Below, piece after piece: positions 10,143 to 24,704 of a stretch of DNA of 59,537 nucleotides (position 1 is the stretch's first letter; each line of letters opens with the position of its first letter). The stretch is from Octopus bimaculoides (taxonomy: Eukaryota): assembly GCF_001194135.2 (NCBI RefSeq), contig NC_069005.1, positions 978,076 through 1,037,612 on the forward strand, given 5' to 3'. The notes below the pieces were generated by a model. It was not told the DNA's origin and did no database searches. It saw only the letters and a program-made list of their open reading frames with translations. A program made the position numbers and the translations under genes.

Positions 10143-10522
10143 TTATACAGTTGTTTCCATCCCATTGTTAGGGGAAGGGGCTGCTTCATTGTCTGTCGAC
10201 AGGGATGCCATGGTGCAGTGATAACGCATTTGGTGAATAGAGGGTGCTGGTGCTGGTGGAGGTGGTGGTAACAGTGCAGGGTCAAGCCCTTGATCATAGA
10301 TTATGGTTTCGTACGGAGGAGGAGGATCGTAGCCCGGATATGGAGGCAGTTCGACTGGTTTGGGGAAATCCATGCTGGAGAATATTCCAAAGAAGCCTTC
10401 CCAAGTGAGAATATCATAGGGGTCGGCATGGAGTTCCCCTATAGTTCCTATAGGGCCCCGCGGATGGCCTGACTGTTGGCTTCGCCCAATATCCTGGTGT
10501 GCTATAGGAAAGAGATAAACAC
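10143..10522 (-). CDS. Terminal coding exon of CUB-like single-pass membrane protein: cytoplasmic tail with LPPY, PPPPY, YDIL, YETI and polyproline
   Basis: Acceptor gcAG|GT at 10524-10523, phase 1; open frame (G)VYLFPIAHQDIG...VELPPYPGYDPPPPYETIIY...NNGMETTV*; GC-rich island in AT-rich flanks. Confidence 0.85.
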
Positions 10523-10654
10523 CTGCATATTCATATAAAATATATATAAATAACATATATATACACATACACAAAACATACACATTATTTTATGTCAATT
10601 TATGTGAAATAAATGTTAATTTGTATGAGGTTATGTTAACATTTTAAAAGGTTC

Positions 10655-10750
10655 AGTTACTCATTAGATAATTGGGTTTGTTGTAATTTTTAGCTCTGAT
10701 CAAGTTACTCATTAGATAATTGGGTTTGTTGTAATTTTTAGCTCTGATCA
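10655..10750. repeat. Perfect 48-bp tandem duplication
   Basis: agttactcattagataattgggtttgttgtaatttttagctctgatca at 10655 and 10703. Confidence 0.95.
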
Positions 10751-13026
10751 AGTAAACCCATGAATAAATACATTCTAGCCATGACAATCCTGTCTTTGTT
10801 TTCTCAGATACAGAATAAAGAAAACTACTTCAACTAAAGTGTCCTTCCTTCCTTGTAATTTTAAGTATGGAATTTGTTTCTAGTAATAACCAAAGGTATG
10901 CCAAGAAGGTTTAATACTAAAAAATGTTAATAACTTGACAGCATTTTTGTAGAATGTAATTTGAAGAATATTTGGCTGCTGTTTCTAGCATAGAAGTTCC
11001 TCAATTGAAGGTTAAATGGAATAAGGAAGTGATTGGCATAACATTATTATTGTCAGAGCTGAGCAAGTACTGAAGTCTGTCGCTGATGAACGATAACATA
11101 AAATTGTTGACAGAGCAAAGTTAGTTGAGATACGGTCCCAGGATGGCATGGTTCTTATCAGACTGATAGAGAAAATCTTTGATGAGAACTAATTATATTT
11201 CATGACATGGAAAAATTTCCATGGACTCCTTCTGCATGAAAAACACATAAGTGTGTGTGTGTGTGGGTGGGGTTAATATAATGAAACAAAAAATAATTTA
11301 TCAATTAAAAATTCACTGTAAATGGATGGAAAGGTTATTATCATGAAGGAATACAGAGATCATTATCACTAATGAACATTCTTGTCAAGAAAGACAAGGG
11401 CCACAACTCTGTATGTCCTTTTGATTGAAAAGTTTGGTTAACCTTAGAACAGAATGTATGTTACACTCCACTCAGTTATGTGTCCACAGAAATAGTAATA
11501 TCAACAGGCTAAGATCAGAACAGATAACCTTTGTATGTGGCAGAGTGTCTCTCAGACAAGAGTTGCTAAGCAGCAAAAGCAATGAAAGATAGATTAAGCA
11601 AGAGAGAAGAAGAATGGCATTTTGTAAGTGAGGCAGAGGGAGCTGCTGGTGTTTTCTGGTAGCTGTGGGGGGAGGAGGAAGAGGAGAAACACTGCGCATA
11701 TCAACAAAAGGTTATACATGGGTCTGTTCCTTAGAAACTTGAGAATGGTACCAATGCAGACGAGAGCAGATCACCTCTCTTCAACACACGATTATTATGA
11801 TTGCATCACATTTTGAAAGTTATGCTTTTTTCAGCCCAAGAGAGGCAGTGACTCTATTTTGTCCACTTGGACTGCAGGTTCAAGTCTTGCCATACAAATT
11901 TTTCTCTGACATGAAAACAAGGATGGAATACAACACACAAAAGATTTACCAAAAAAATCACACAGCAGCAGAATAATATGAATCGATTCTATTCCATATC
12001 TAAGACCATTTTACTTCTTGTTGTAAAGTGAAAAATAATAGATAACTCTGAAACTAGAAGTAGTGACAACAAGGGACAACAAGGGACATAGCTTTTGGAG
12101 AAGCCTCTTTACACAGCACATTCAGCACTACCAAGGTGGACTTTTACACCGTCTCTAGAATCAAAGGTTTCAAGAAAAGTACAATTTCAAACGAAATTAT
12201 ATATCTTGTGGTTCTCTAGAAAGTGCCAACCATTTTACAGTTTTCAAAATAACTGAAATTCATTTACAGATGCAGTTAATTAAATGTGATTGCAAATGTC
12301 AACGATGTCGTTTATCAGAGGAAGACATGTGTAACCTAATCTGTCTTCTTCTGAGATGAGGGGTTTATTTTCCCTTCTTTGGGAATGGGAGACACTCTAA
12401 TGTGTTTCCAAAAACCAAGACAGATTCCTGTGTGGAAAGAGAGAGAAAGAGAGAGAAAGAGAAAGAGAGAGAGAGTTGGTTGAGGGGAGGAGTTAGCTCT
12501 AGGATATAAGTGTTTAAAGCTAATGAGATGCTGTCAGAATCGTTGGTTTGAAATGACTGGAGGCTGTTTTGTACTTGGTGTGTGTGTGGAGTGAGCTTGG
12601 TAGTATGCAGGGAAATAGCTTCTGATGTGATTTGTATAATGTGTGTGTGTGTGTGTGTGTGTGTGTGTGTGTGTGTGTGCAAAATGGGTAAAGAATGTGG
12701 AGACAGAGAAATTCCTTTGACAAGGGACAGAAAAGGGGTCAGCTGCAACTTGAGGGGTCACAAAGCTTACAGGTTATGTGATCCTTGGCCATATTCTTCA
12801 CCTATATTTATGGTACACCAACATTACAAAGCTCATCTCTCCCTCCCTTTCTGTCACCCTCACTCCTCTTTCTCTCTCTCATTCTCTTTCCCTTCCTCCC
12901 TCCCCCCCTCTCTCAAAATACGTCCACTTCATTAATTGTAATTCCCTCACCAAAAAAACTACCTACGGCTATGTATGTTCCTCAAACTGACAATTAGAAT
13001 AGGATATAGTATAACAAAATACAAAC

Positions 13027-13218
13027 CAGTTCTTCTGTGCCGCAGAATTCTAGTTAGTGTGAAGCTTGTGTTGGGAGTTTCATTGATGCGCAGTTGGCTC
13101 CGGCGCCATACGTGATAGGTGAAAGCACTGGCTATTAACAGGATAAGTGGAATGACGATTCCAATGGCAAGCAGAAGGGTGTGGCTTGATGTGTTTGGGG
13201 CTGTAGTTTGGTGGGAGT
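13027..13218 (-). CDS. Transmembrane exon of the CUB-like membrane protein
   Basis: Acceptor tttcattttcAG, donor G|GTTTGT, 192 nt, phase 1-1. Translation SHQTTAPNTSSHT-LLLAIGIVIPLILLIASAFTY-HVWRRSQLR...RHRRT: hydrophobic helix followed by basic stop-transfer residues. Joins in frame to the 10522 exon. Confidence 0.88.
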
Positions 13219-22176: not shown

Positions 22177-23487
22177 CTGCATCTCATAGCAGAAACTGCT
22201 GTAAGCCAATGAAGTTCATTACATAACATTTGGTTTTTCCAGTGTCATCTCTTCATTTCCAATTACTACTCTATACTATACTATACTATATACATATACA
22301 CACACAAACATATATGTGCTTAAATATCATAATGTAAATGTTGTAACACATTGAAATATATTTTACATATGTTGAGATGTCTGATAAGTTTATTCCATCA
22401 CAGTTTACTCTCACTTTGGTCCCTGGTTGGGTTTTTGAACACACATACACACATATATATATGTGAGAGAAATATATATATGTACACACACACACACACA
22501 CACACACACACACAGACATACACATAATGATACATAACATGCATATATATATATGTACATAAATATTTGAAATATATATTGTTTGTGATACATATATATA
22601 TATATGACATATATATATATAAATACATTGGTGTATATTTATATATACGCACATATATTTCTATATGTATACTTATATGTATATATACACACAAAACACA
22701 CACAGGTATATATATATATATATGTAAGCATATATGTAAACACACACACACACACATAGAAGCGTGTGTTATCTCTTTTGCTTTACTGTTTTAAATAAGT
22801 CACTTTGTCGCTATTGTATGTTTTGTACTTAACCAAAATACGAAATATCACGAAATGTTACCGAGGAAATATTAAAATTTTAAAAGCTTTACCTTCCGTT
22901 TTAATGAAGAAATAAAACTACATACATATGCCACTCCATACCACTCTCATATAAATATACATACATACATACATACACACACACACACACATATATATAT
23001 ATATATATATATATATANNNNNNNNNNNNNNNNNNNNNNNNNNNNNNNNNNNNNNNNNNNNNNNNNNNNNNNNNNNNNNNNNNNNNNNNNNNNNNNNNNN
23101 NNNNNNNNNNNNNNNNNNNNNNNNNNNNNNNNNNNNNNNNNNNNNNNNNNNNNNNNNNNNNNNNNNNNNNNNNNNNNNNNNNNNNNNNNNNNNNNNNNNN
23201 NNNNNNNNNNNNNNNNNNNNNNNNNNNNNNNNNNNNNNNNNNNNNNNNNNNNNNNNNNNNNNNNNNNNNNNNNNNNNNNNNNNNNNNNNNNNNNNNNNNN
23301 NNNNNNNNNNNNNNNNNNNNNNNNNNNNNNNNNNNNNNNNNNNNNNNNNNNNNNNNNNNNNNNNNNNNNNNNNNNNNNNNNNNNNNNNNNNNNNNNNNNN
23401 NNNNNNNNNNNNNNNNNNNNNNNNNNNNNNNNNNNNNNNNNNNNNNNNNNNNNNNNNNNNNNNNNNNNATATATATATATATATATA

Positions 23488-23680
23488 GACAAACAGATAG
23501 CCAGATGGATAGACAGGTTGATAAGTAGACAGATAACTTGATAGATAGACAGACAGACAGACAGATAGATAGATAGATAAACAGATATAGGCAGATAGAT
23601 AAATAGACAGACTGGCAGACAGAGACAGACAAACAGGCAGGCAGACAGACGGACAGAGAGATAGACAGCTAGTTAGACAG
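23488..23680. repeat. (GATA)n/(GACA)n compound microsatellite
   Basis: Direct reading. Confidence 0.9.
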
Positions 23681-24664
23681 ATGTATTTAAAGGTAAATTA
23701 ATCGGTAATTAATAAGAGAAGCAGGTAGATCGACAGATATGATTGATAGACAGAGCCTAAAAACAGTGAAAAATGGAGATATTGTGGCTTACAACATGGA
23801 AATAAGTGTATCTAGGTTGATATTGTCTCGAATGGATTCTAGCAGTGGCCATTGAACCTTACAATTAATGTTTTGTCTCTGTGAGTGCGTGTGTGTGTAT
23901 CTATGTCTGTCAACTAGAATAGCTTACATAAGTGGTTAAAGATACAGTCTCTGTTAATCGTGTCGACTTATGATGAAAGGCTGAAACAGCCAGGACCACC
24001 TGTCTTTTGTGTGCGTTTTTAGCATATCTTACGACTACATTATCAAATGTATCGTTTCTTTGTTCGTGTCTGATTTAAGGCAGATTTGACTGCTATTTCT
24101 AGCCGTTTTTCGTTAGCTTGTAGAGGGCGTTGTGAGTGTGGATGCATTCATAAGCTTACATGTGTGTGTGTGTGTGTGGCTAAGCTTGGACGGATATTAA
24201 TGACACATATACTGCTGTGTGTGTATATTAAGCGTATGGAATCTAGTTTAAGCACATGTGTGAGTGTGTATGCATGTTTAGGAATGTCATAATTCTTTGT
24301 GTTGTGTTCTTGAGTGAAATGCTACATGGTGAGCTGTGTGTGTGTGTGTGTGTATGTACGAGACAGATACAAATATGTCTGTATGTAAACGTGTGTATGT
24401 GTGAGTGATGTGGGGGGAGAGCTTGAGAGACAAAGAGACTTGAGTATATATATGTGTGTAGGCAAATATGTGTGTGTGTGTTTAGTTATCGATTACGTAC
24501 TCTGTGACAGGTTGTTTTTTCTTTTCTTTTTGCTGTGATTGAATCTGTTGTTTGTGATAAGAGAATAAATATATTATGGAAACAGCTTGTTATTAAAAGC
24601 CTCAGCATTCGGTTCTAATCGTTGTTGTTGCTGCTATGATGATGATGGTGATTATTATTATTAC

Positions 24665-24704
24665 TGTGGTGGCGTTTAGAGATTCTAGCTGTGCAGGTAC
24701 TCAT
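24665..24704 (-). CDS. Candidate first coding exon of the CUB-like gene (MSTCTARISKRHH + phase 1)
   Basis: gccgtcatcATGA start context, donor CA|GTAATA in phase 1 compatible with 22176. Weak donor; plausible but unproven. Confidence 0.35.

Follow-up and report, generated by a model that had tools for sequence, protein, structure and literature searches.

We analysed a 59,537-nt stretch of the Octopus bimaculoides genome (NC_069005.1, positions 978,076-1,037,612 of the forward strand), hereafter called the window, and studied the region at 10143-24704 within it (all coordinates are those of the window unless a locus is named). The region holds LOC106876041, a minus-strand gene of six exons whose product is ~368 residues long (alternatively ~375), and we regard this identification as nearly certain. 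The best explanation of the locus overall is that this coleoid gene encodes a type I membrane glycoprotein that may act as an adaptor by means of PY (L/PPxY) motifs and a PDZ ligand, a reading to which we give a probability of about 0.5. A sequence-only reading of the same DNA had proposed a minus-strand spliced gene here; its single-pass membrane protein with a PY-motif tail held up, but its exon chain was wrong in four places. The gene is already deposited, unnamed, in sister species, and what is new is the corrected O. bimaculoides gene model together with the motif and fold reading of its product.

A six-exon gene on the minus strand

When the exons of the sequence-only reading were concatenated and compared with 5.8 billion proteins, only four clusters were returned: an O. 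vulgaris 'Hypothetical predicted protein' of 367 residues (P0001), the Argonauta hians 'uncharacterized protein LOC115224201 isoform X2' of 393 residues (P0002), and two clusters of 366 residues each from Logan assemblies (P0003 and P0004). These four homologues were placed on the window by tblastn, and splice sites and phases were then checked. All readable splice sites are AG/GT and the phases match throughout; the sole unreadable site is the acceptor of exon 3, which lies inside an assembly gap.

Exon 1 (20265-20160), located with P0001 and checked for its splice sites, opens with an ATG at 20265-20263, 27 nt downstream of an in-frame stop, and ends at a GTAAGT donor at 20159. It encodes a hydrophobic, signal-peptide-like N-terminus (28 residues, followed by MT) and an NNT sequon, and it is identical to the public O. 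bimaculoides fragment P0005. Exon 2 (18482-18229; acceptor CAG at 18485-18483, donor GTACGT at 18228) encodes the first two-thirds of the ectodomain, including three of its four conserved cysteines, and the readable 3' part of exon 3 (17160-17078; donor GTGAGT at 17077) encodes the end of that domain (YYGILEINKQFQNQTNFYCKAKVTIIP). Exon 4 (13460-13410; acceptor TAG, donor GTAAGT) specifies a Thr/Pro stalk (DPTTSLPWPTTLFNGDN), and its equivalent was found in O. vulgaris and Sepia pharaonis. An NTS sequon, the transmembrane (TM) helix (13189-13106; SSHTLLLAIGIVIPLILLIASAFTYHVW) and the basic juxtamembrane sequence WRRSQLR are carried by exon 5 (13218-13027). In the 367/368-residue isoform, exon 6 (10501-10143) encodes the cytosolic tail and ends with a TAA stop at 10145-10143; along it lie LPPY (10349-10338), PPPY (10322-10311) followed by E-T-I-I, PPPPPAPAPS (10268-10239) and ETTV (10157-10146).

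Two in-frame acceptors for exon 6 lie 21 nt apart, CAG/GT at 10522 (junction 10523/10522) and TAG/CA at 10501, and both are conserved in O. vulgaris. Use of the first adds the 21-nt extension 10522-10502, which encodes GVYLFPI, and corresponds to O. sinensis isoform X1 (P0006, 374 residues, with GVYLFPI); the second corresponds to isoform X2 (P0007, 367 residues) and is the one used by the orthologues other than O. sinensis isoform X1.

Comparison with other cephalopods supports this model. The same six exons are present in the O. vulgaris locus (L002), where translation of the assembled coding sequence (CDS) gives exactly P0001. The Sepia pharaonis locus (L013) has the six exons with the same junction phases, spread across 42.9 kb, and the identical Sepia protein is found on RNA-seq contigs of 1.5-3.4 kb as an uninterrupted CDS of 1101 nt. 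These contigs are spliced mRNAs, which shows that the gene is transcribed and spliced in cuttlefish. The P0003 and P0004 proteins likewise occur on many RNA-seq contigs of 1.5-3.4 kb with their CDS uninterrupted. Between the window and O. vulgaris, synonymous divergence (dS) is 0.245 and nonsynonymous divergence (dN) 0.017, giving a dN/dS of 0.069 over 346 codons, which, on this pairwise codon comparison, shows the gene to be under purifying selection.

Downstream of the stop codon, ~4.8 kb are ~82% identical to O. vulgaris (window 5999-10584 versus L002 22418-26865), and the Sepia mRNA contigs continue for at least 2 kb past the stop. Together, this downstream conservation and the Sepia contigs suggest a long 3' untranslated region.

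Architecture and conservation of the protein

Residues are numbered on P0001 below, and identities are those between P0001 and the other three homologue clusters. The signal-like N-terminus (residues 1-28) is hydrophobic, with small residues at -3/-1, and is 18-28% identical. It is followed by an all-beta ectodomain (29-167; 59-61% identity) with invariant cysteines at 43, 77, 101 and 124 and N-glycosylation sequons, and by the Thr/Pro stalk (168-194; 22-37%). The TM helix (195-222) is 96-100% identical, with 27 of its 28 positions invariant across the four clusters, and is followed by WRRSQLR. The cytosolic tail (223-367) is predicted to be disordered and has a core at 263-313 of 78-82% identity.

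Within this core, FSSMDFPKPVELPPYPGYDxPPPYE is invariant; both LPPY and PPPY lie in it, and E-[ST]-[IV]-[IV] comes after PPPY. The resulting PPPYE[ST][IV] form runs on into a Yxx-phi endocytic-type motif. Two further stretches, PPPPPAPAPS and the C-terminal E-T-T-V, show no variation among the four clusters. Since the rest of the tail around these motifs is only 33-52% identical, LPPY, PPPY, PPPPPAPAPS and ETTV stand out as candidate functional short motifs. ETTV directly precedes the stop codon in the window (10157-10143) and fits the class I PDZ-ligand pattern X-[S/T]-X-hydrophobic-COOH, making it a putative class I PDZ ligand by motif match. In the distal tail of the Argonauta hians protein (P0002, ~355-380) there is a ~20-residue Pro/Thr-rich insertion that is not present in Octopus or Sepia; its PY motifs and ETTV are intact despite this insertion.

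The L/PPxY motifs lie downstream of the TM helix and the WRRSQLR stop-transfer sequence in all homologues. Hydropathy is maximal at residues 202-214, and an AlphaFold2 (AF2) model contains an N-terminal helix, nine beta strands over 34-167 (predicted local distance difference test, pLDDT, ~70-80), a helix at 197-229 and a disordered tail. Taken with the positive-inside rule, the hydropathy profile and the modelled helix lead us to infer that the PY motifs are cytosolic. A type I topology, with short motifs that are functional, appears fairly likely from the sequences compared. These features bear out much of what had been described from the sequence only: the product is predicted to be a type I single-pass protein whose ectodomain is small, Cys-containing and all-beta and bears N-glycosylation sequons, and after the TM helix come WRRSQLR and a PY tail of ~145 residues.

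The fold of the ectodomain

The ectodomain had been described as divergent and CUB-like, a claim that obtained no signal from sequence methods and weak support from one of two AF2 models. No hit to PF00431 (CUB) was found in Pfam at an expect value (E) of 10 or less, either with the concatenated exons of the earlier reading or with the four full-length homologues; the same sequences gave only sub-threshold, TM-driven matches (GAPT, MpPF26, DUF2270). A search of all PDB sequences with the family profile returned no CUB chain and only a TM-helix look-alike in LAG-3 (E 0.03). Alignment of the ectodomain profile to seven CUB domains, whose sequences were verified against the PDB, was performed with hhalign, run both locally and globally alongside shuffled and reversed controls, and gave a probability of 0.2% and a score of 12.2, versus 11.7 +/- 2.1 for 100 column shuffles. 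Furthermore, part of the original CUB argument ('...GKFYPK') derived from a spurious exon at 22176-22022 that is discussed below.

AF2 models were built with the O. vulgaris (model 1) and Sepia (model 2) proteins as targets, model 1 from an alignment of only four sequences. The top Foldseek matches of model 1 (ectodomain pLDDT 70-80) were the spermadhesin CUBs 1spp_B and 1sfp, at a weak E of 3e-4 and with target-normalised TM-scores of 0.69 and 0.63; further CUB matches were meteorin, PCPE-1 and BAI3, and the non-CUB ColG collagen-binding domain, Clostridium perfringens enterotoxin C-domain and MAM appeared at similar E. For model 2 (pLDDT 45-62), APC10/DOC came first and 1spp_B third, no hit reached E<=1e-3, and the matches were generic jelly rolls, so that this low-confidence model added nothing to the case for a CUB fold. 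Cryo-EM chains of ELAPOR1 (9vqm_D, 9vql), a type I endosomal membrane protein, were among the top Foldseek matches of both models, at a low TM-score; this match probably reflects just a common beta-sandwich module.

The spacing of Cys 43/77/101/124 (34/24/23) is CUB-like when set beside that of NRP1 CUB1 (~27/28/22). The strand contexts of the cysteines are the start of 'ICTMTFAI', a position just ahead of 'VTARLYLL', and 'EFTC' at a strand end; in a manual comparison of DSSP strings with NRP1 CUB1, the four cysteines appear to fall at CUB-like strand positions. On these models, we somewhat favour a disulfide-bonded jelly-roll beta sandwich of CUB-like topology, while membership of the CUB family itself is not demonstrable.

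A family of coleoid cephalopods

When 1.84 billion representatives were searched exhaustively with an HMMER profile, the family's own cluster was the only one returned, and a word-indexed, alignment-seeded search at E<=10 returned only the same four clusters. The named members come from O. vulgaris, O. sinensis, O. bimaculoides, Argonauta hians and Sepia (Acanthosepion) pharaonis, and all are annotated as 'uncharacterized', 'hypothetical' or 'unnamed'. On the sequences searched, the family appears so far to be restricted to coleoid cephalopods (octopuses, argonauts and cuttlefish). The sequence-only reading had suggested both a lineage-specific protein and one that could be assigned to no named family, and on both points these searches agree with it: the profile searches return coleoid cephalopod members only, and all the relatives are uncharacterized or hypothetical. 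The present analysis provides a first reading of the domains and motifs of this family, which had been known only from Octopus, Argonauta and Sepia entries labelled 'uncharacterized'. We consider LOC106876041 a well-supported orphan gene whose function can be reasoned by analogy, and not a surprising new system.

Proposed function and alternatives

The tandem LPxY and PPxY motifs, the putative class I PDZ ligand and the near-invariant TM helix together favour a PY/PDZ membrane adaptor. In such a mechanism, the protein would reside in the plasma or endosomal membrane, and the CUB-like beta-sandwich ectodomain and the TM helix would both contact a partner; the near-invariance of the helix suggests an intramembrane partner interface. 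By analogy with Commissureless, PRRG4, NDFIP and the Shisa-like adaptors, the tandem PY motifs would recruit NEDD4-family HECT ligases through their WW domains, and the recruited ligases would steer ubiquitin-dependent endocytosis or lysosomal sorting of both the protein and its partner. The class I PDZ ligand might in turn link the protein to junctional or synaptic PDZ scaffolds, in the way known for NETO1. An adaptor of this Comm/PRRG/NETO type, controlling the ubiquitin-dependent trafficking and localisation of a partner, is put forward tentatively, at somewhat less than even odds.

Several points weigh against this adaptor. The mechanism draws on motifs and analogy, and PY motifs are also bound by WW proteins that are not ligases. 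Pfam, PDB-sequence and exhaustive profile searches detected no homologue among the known adaptor families, and literature searches for the protein and gene accessions and the SRA (Sequence Read Archive) runs gave no mention of them. The fold of the ectodomain depends on a single model, of medium confidence and based on only four sequences, the other one being poor; cleavage of the signal peptide was judged by eye; and 21 codons of exon 3 are unreadable in the O. bimaculoides assembly.

The near-invariance of the TM helix would also suit an auxiliary subunit of the CUB type, in which the ectodomain and TM helix bind, cluster or gate an ion channel or neurotransmitter receptor in the manner of NETO, SOL-1/2 or LEV-10, the complex is held at PSD-95/Dlg-type scaffolds by ETTV, and the PY motifs serve only to adjust how the protein itself is turned over. 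No part of the protein is better conserved than the TM helix (27 of 28 positions invariant), as would be expected of an intramembrane interface, the class I PDZ ligand is invariant, CUB domains are the best fold matches, and NETO1 is itself a type I CUB protein whose class I PDZ ligand binds PSD-95 (PMC9083331). However, the octopus protein has a single CUB-like domain, no LDLa domain and no sequence similarity to any CUB. We consider an auxiliary subunit unlikely, and it overlaps the adaptor reading instead of excluding it.

The same motifs could also belong to a signalling or adhesion receptor whose PPxY recruits non-ligase WW proteins (YAP/Yorkie, dystrophin/utrophin, WWOX or MAGI) in place of NEDD4-family ligases. 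PPPY, the nearby PxxP-rich PPPPPAPAPS and the PDZ ligand are all invariant, and MAGI-type scaffolds have both WW and PDZ domains. Nevertheless, a short single-pass protein with LPxY and PPxY in tandem shows the typical signature of a NEDD4 adaptor (PMC5578492, PMC12101832), and PPPYE[ST][IV] extends into the Yxx-phi endocytic-type motif, so that we find a receptor of this kind distinctly improbable.

If the PY/PDZ adaptor reading is true, the gene would be a lineage-restricted regulator of membrane-protein trafficking in animals noted for neural and morphological novelty. More broadly, the family might be a coleoid innovation, an adaptor born in that lineage or diverged past recognition, in which a divergent CUB-like ectodomain and an invariant TM helix are coupled to NEDD4-type ligases and PDZ scaffolds; such a counterpart of Commissureless (Comm) would control the surface levels of receptors or channels, plausibly at synapses or junctions. 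We regard this wider scenario as possible but doubtful.

Assembly gaps, the truncated public model and spurious exons

The window is AT-rich (37% GC) and is interrupted by 11 runs of N. One of these gaps, at 17161-17844, hides the exon 3 acceptor and ~62 nt of coding sequence (21 codons; KEFTCNTTSYREPVYLRGGQH in O. vulgaris), and with them the fourth conserved cysteine. In O. vulgaris, exon 3 is one exon of 145 nt (L002 13830-13974). The 83 nt that survive in the window begin at the gap edge, are in the orthologous frame and are 100% identical to O. vulgaris in protein and DNA, and both flanks of the gap are collinear with the gap-free O. vulgaris locus. A shorter exon 3 starting from an internal CAG (17130/17129) is in frame but was rejected, as the orthologues have a single 145-nt exon, which reaches into the gap. 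Two other gaps (20754-21618 and 23018-23468) lie in TA microsatellites upstream of the ATG, outside the gene, and bear only on the spurious first exon of the sequence-only reading. Microsatellites of the TA/TATACA and CTAT types border the gaps (20343-20753, 21619-21800, 22900-23600), and the gaps of this region probably represent simple repeats that the assembly left unresolved.

The public O. bimaculoides protein, XP_014779909.1 (P0005), is 122 residues long and consists of exons 1 and 2 of the window plus the read-through 'VR*'. Because the gap at 17161-17844 took away the exon 3 acceptor, this model is a truncation artefact, and the true protein, as corrected here, has ~368 residues. The end of the public model after exon 2 and the 21 codons that cannot be read would, at face value, suit a broken gene or pseudogene in O. 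bimaculoides. However, loss of the exon 3 acceptor to the gap accounts for the truncation, all 347 of the 347 readable codons are intact, the readable splice sites are canonical and dN/dS is 0.069; a pseudogene is highly improbable.

Mapping of the orthologues also resolved which of the originally proposed exons are real. Exon 13218-13027, with the TM helix, was placed exactly, as were the donor at 17078 and the running of that exon into the gap; exon 10522-10143 is exact for the O. sinensis-type isoform X1 of 374 residues, with other forms starting at 10501. For the exon given as 18399-18229, the donor at 18229 is correct but 18399 is internal to the exon, whose true acceptor is at 18483/18482. 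The first exon at 22176-22022 (minus strand) is a chance open frame that is absent from all orthologous proteins and mRNAs and has no match within 10 kb upstream of the O. vulgaris gene. This frame was the source of the 'hydrophobic N-terminus'; the true signal exon at 20265-20160 was overlooked. Similarly, the 39-nt mini-exon at 13839-13801 (minus strand) is intronic: it matches no orthologue residue, the stalk exon is 13460-13410, and its O. vulgaris counterpart is conserved intron DNA with lower amino-acid identity, split between frames. Also missed were exon 4, ETTV as an invariant PDZ ligand, and the fact that the TM helix hardly varies.

Several of the exons in the earlier chain do join in frame when translated. 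However, the minus strand of the region contains 2739 open AG..GT intervals of 36-400 nt (590 measure 150 nt or more), and with so many, GT/AG ends and an open frame are not discriminating here and false exons of this kind are to be expected. The seven-exon model as first written, beginning at 22176-22022 and including 13839-13801, has practically no chance of being right. Canonical GT/AG ends and compatible phases speak for it, but open AG..GT intervals are abundant by chance, both exons are missing from orthologous proteins and cuttlefish mRNAs, the sequence upstream of the O. vulgaris gene is not conserved, and three genomes share the true exons 1 and 4.

Other features of the window

Just past the stop codon, at ~6850-10010, lie several copies of a dispersed SINE-like (short interspersed element) repeat of ~250 nt with long (ATT/ATA)n-type tails, and many copies of the same repeat occur in the O. 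vulgaris locus (L002 22970-26050). The start of the window has an odd composition (45% GC, AT skew 0.5) because of a 2-kb satellite at 2-2020 of (ACGA)n type with a 44-nt period. At the other end, an open reading frame (ORF) on the minus strand at 57533-58123, ending in '...YPSFSNQVVKLGLQLRDIPADG', resembles an initial coding exon for an OTUD3-like deubiquitinase and stops just before the catalytic Cys motif; its sole PDB match was OTUD3 (4bou_A, E 0.12), and it had no match in Pfam. The minus-strand ORF at 55065-55451 contains the C-terminal zinc finger of a piggyBac-type transposase (Pfam zf-Tnp_2, E 7e-6) and is probably a transposon remnant. Neither Rfam families nor tRNAs were detected when the window was scanned for them.

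Comparison with known systems

The sequence-only reading had compared the product with LRP10/LRP12-type receptors, LDLRAD4 and PMEPA1. Like LRP3/LRP10/LRP12, LDLRAD3/4 and PMEPA1, several of which carry PPxY motifs in their tails, the octopus protein is predicted to pass the membrane once. The likeness does not extend to homology, as the exhaustive profile search linked the family to none of the comparators that had been proposed. In contrast to LRP3/10/12 and LDLRAD3/4, the octopus family has no Pfam LDLa hit and only four conserved ectodomain cysteines, and its tail has no visible PPNR Smad-interaction motif.

The spermadhesin CUBs (1spp, 1sfp) are the best structural matches of the better AF2 model and rank third and ninth for the poorer one. 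Nevertheless, identity is ~10% with no signal at the profile level, other jelly rolls (the ColG collagen-binding domain, the enterotoxin C-domain, meprin MAM and APC10/DOC) score nearly equally, and spermadhesins are secreted single-domain proteins.

With NETO1/NETO2, SOL-1/SOL-2 and LEV-10, the octopus protein would share a type I membrane topology and a CUB or CUB-like ectodomain, and with NETO1 also a C-terminal class I PDZ ligand, which in NETO1 binds PSD-95 (PMC9083331). The ectodomains differ, since those proteins have two to five CUBs that are recognisable from sequence, usually together with LDLa, whereas the octopus family has one domain and no Pfam CUB or LDLa hit. The octopus family also has a PY-motif tail, of which the literature found on NETO, SOL and LEV-10 makes no mention.

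The tail resembles those of adaptors for NEDD4-family ligases. NDFIP is a PY-motif adaptor that recruits NEDD4-family ligases (PMC6913780), short TM proteins with L/PPxY motifs make up a class that includes PRRG4, Rcr, Shisa and CYYR1 (PMC5578492), and the PY motifs of Comm bind Nedd4, making Comm a substrate adaptor (PMC12101832). Like Comm, PRRG4, NDFIP and the Shisa-like proteins (STMC6, WBP1, CYYR1), the octopus protein combines cytosolic tandem LPxY and PPxY motifs with a disordered, poorly conserved tail (PMC5578492, PMC12101832, PMC6913780, PMC10531659), and, like the Shisa-like proteins, it joins a Cys-containing ectodomain to a proline-rich tail. No sequence homology to any of these proteins was detected, and the octopus ectodomain would be a four-Cys beta sandwich of ~135 residues, in contrast to the C*C*CC*CC module of Shisa, to a Gla domain and to an ectodomain that is all but absent. 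The pattern described for the Shisa-like/STMC6 group (Shisa, WBP1, VOPP1, CYYR1, TMEM92; PMC5578492) is not found, as the four cysteines are isolated, with no CC pairs, and there is no Pfam hit. NDFIPs differ further in having three TM helices, and the putative C-terminal class I PDZ ligand is an addition of the octopus protein relative to this whole set. With Comm there is one more likeness, in that both are restricted to a lineage, Comm to insects and the octopus gene family to coleoids; Comm offers a precedent for such regulators underlying lineage-specific wiring or cell-surface biology.

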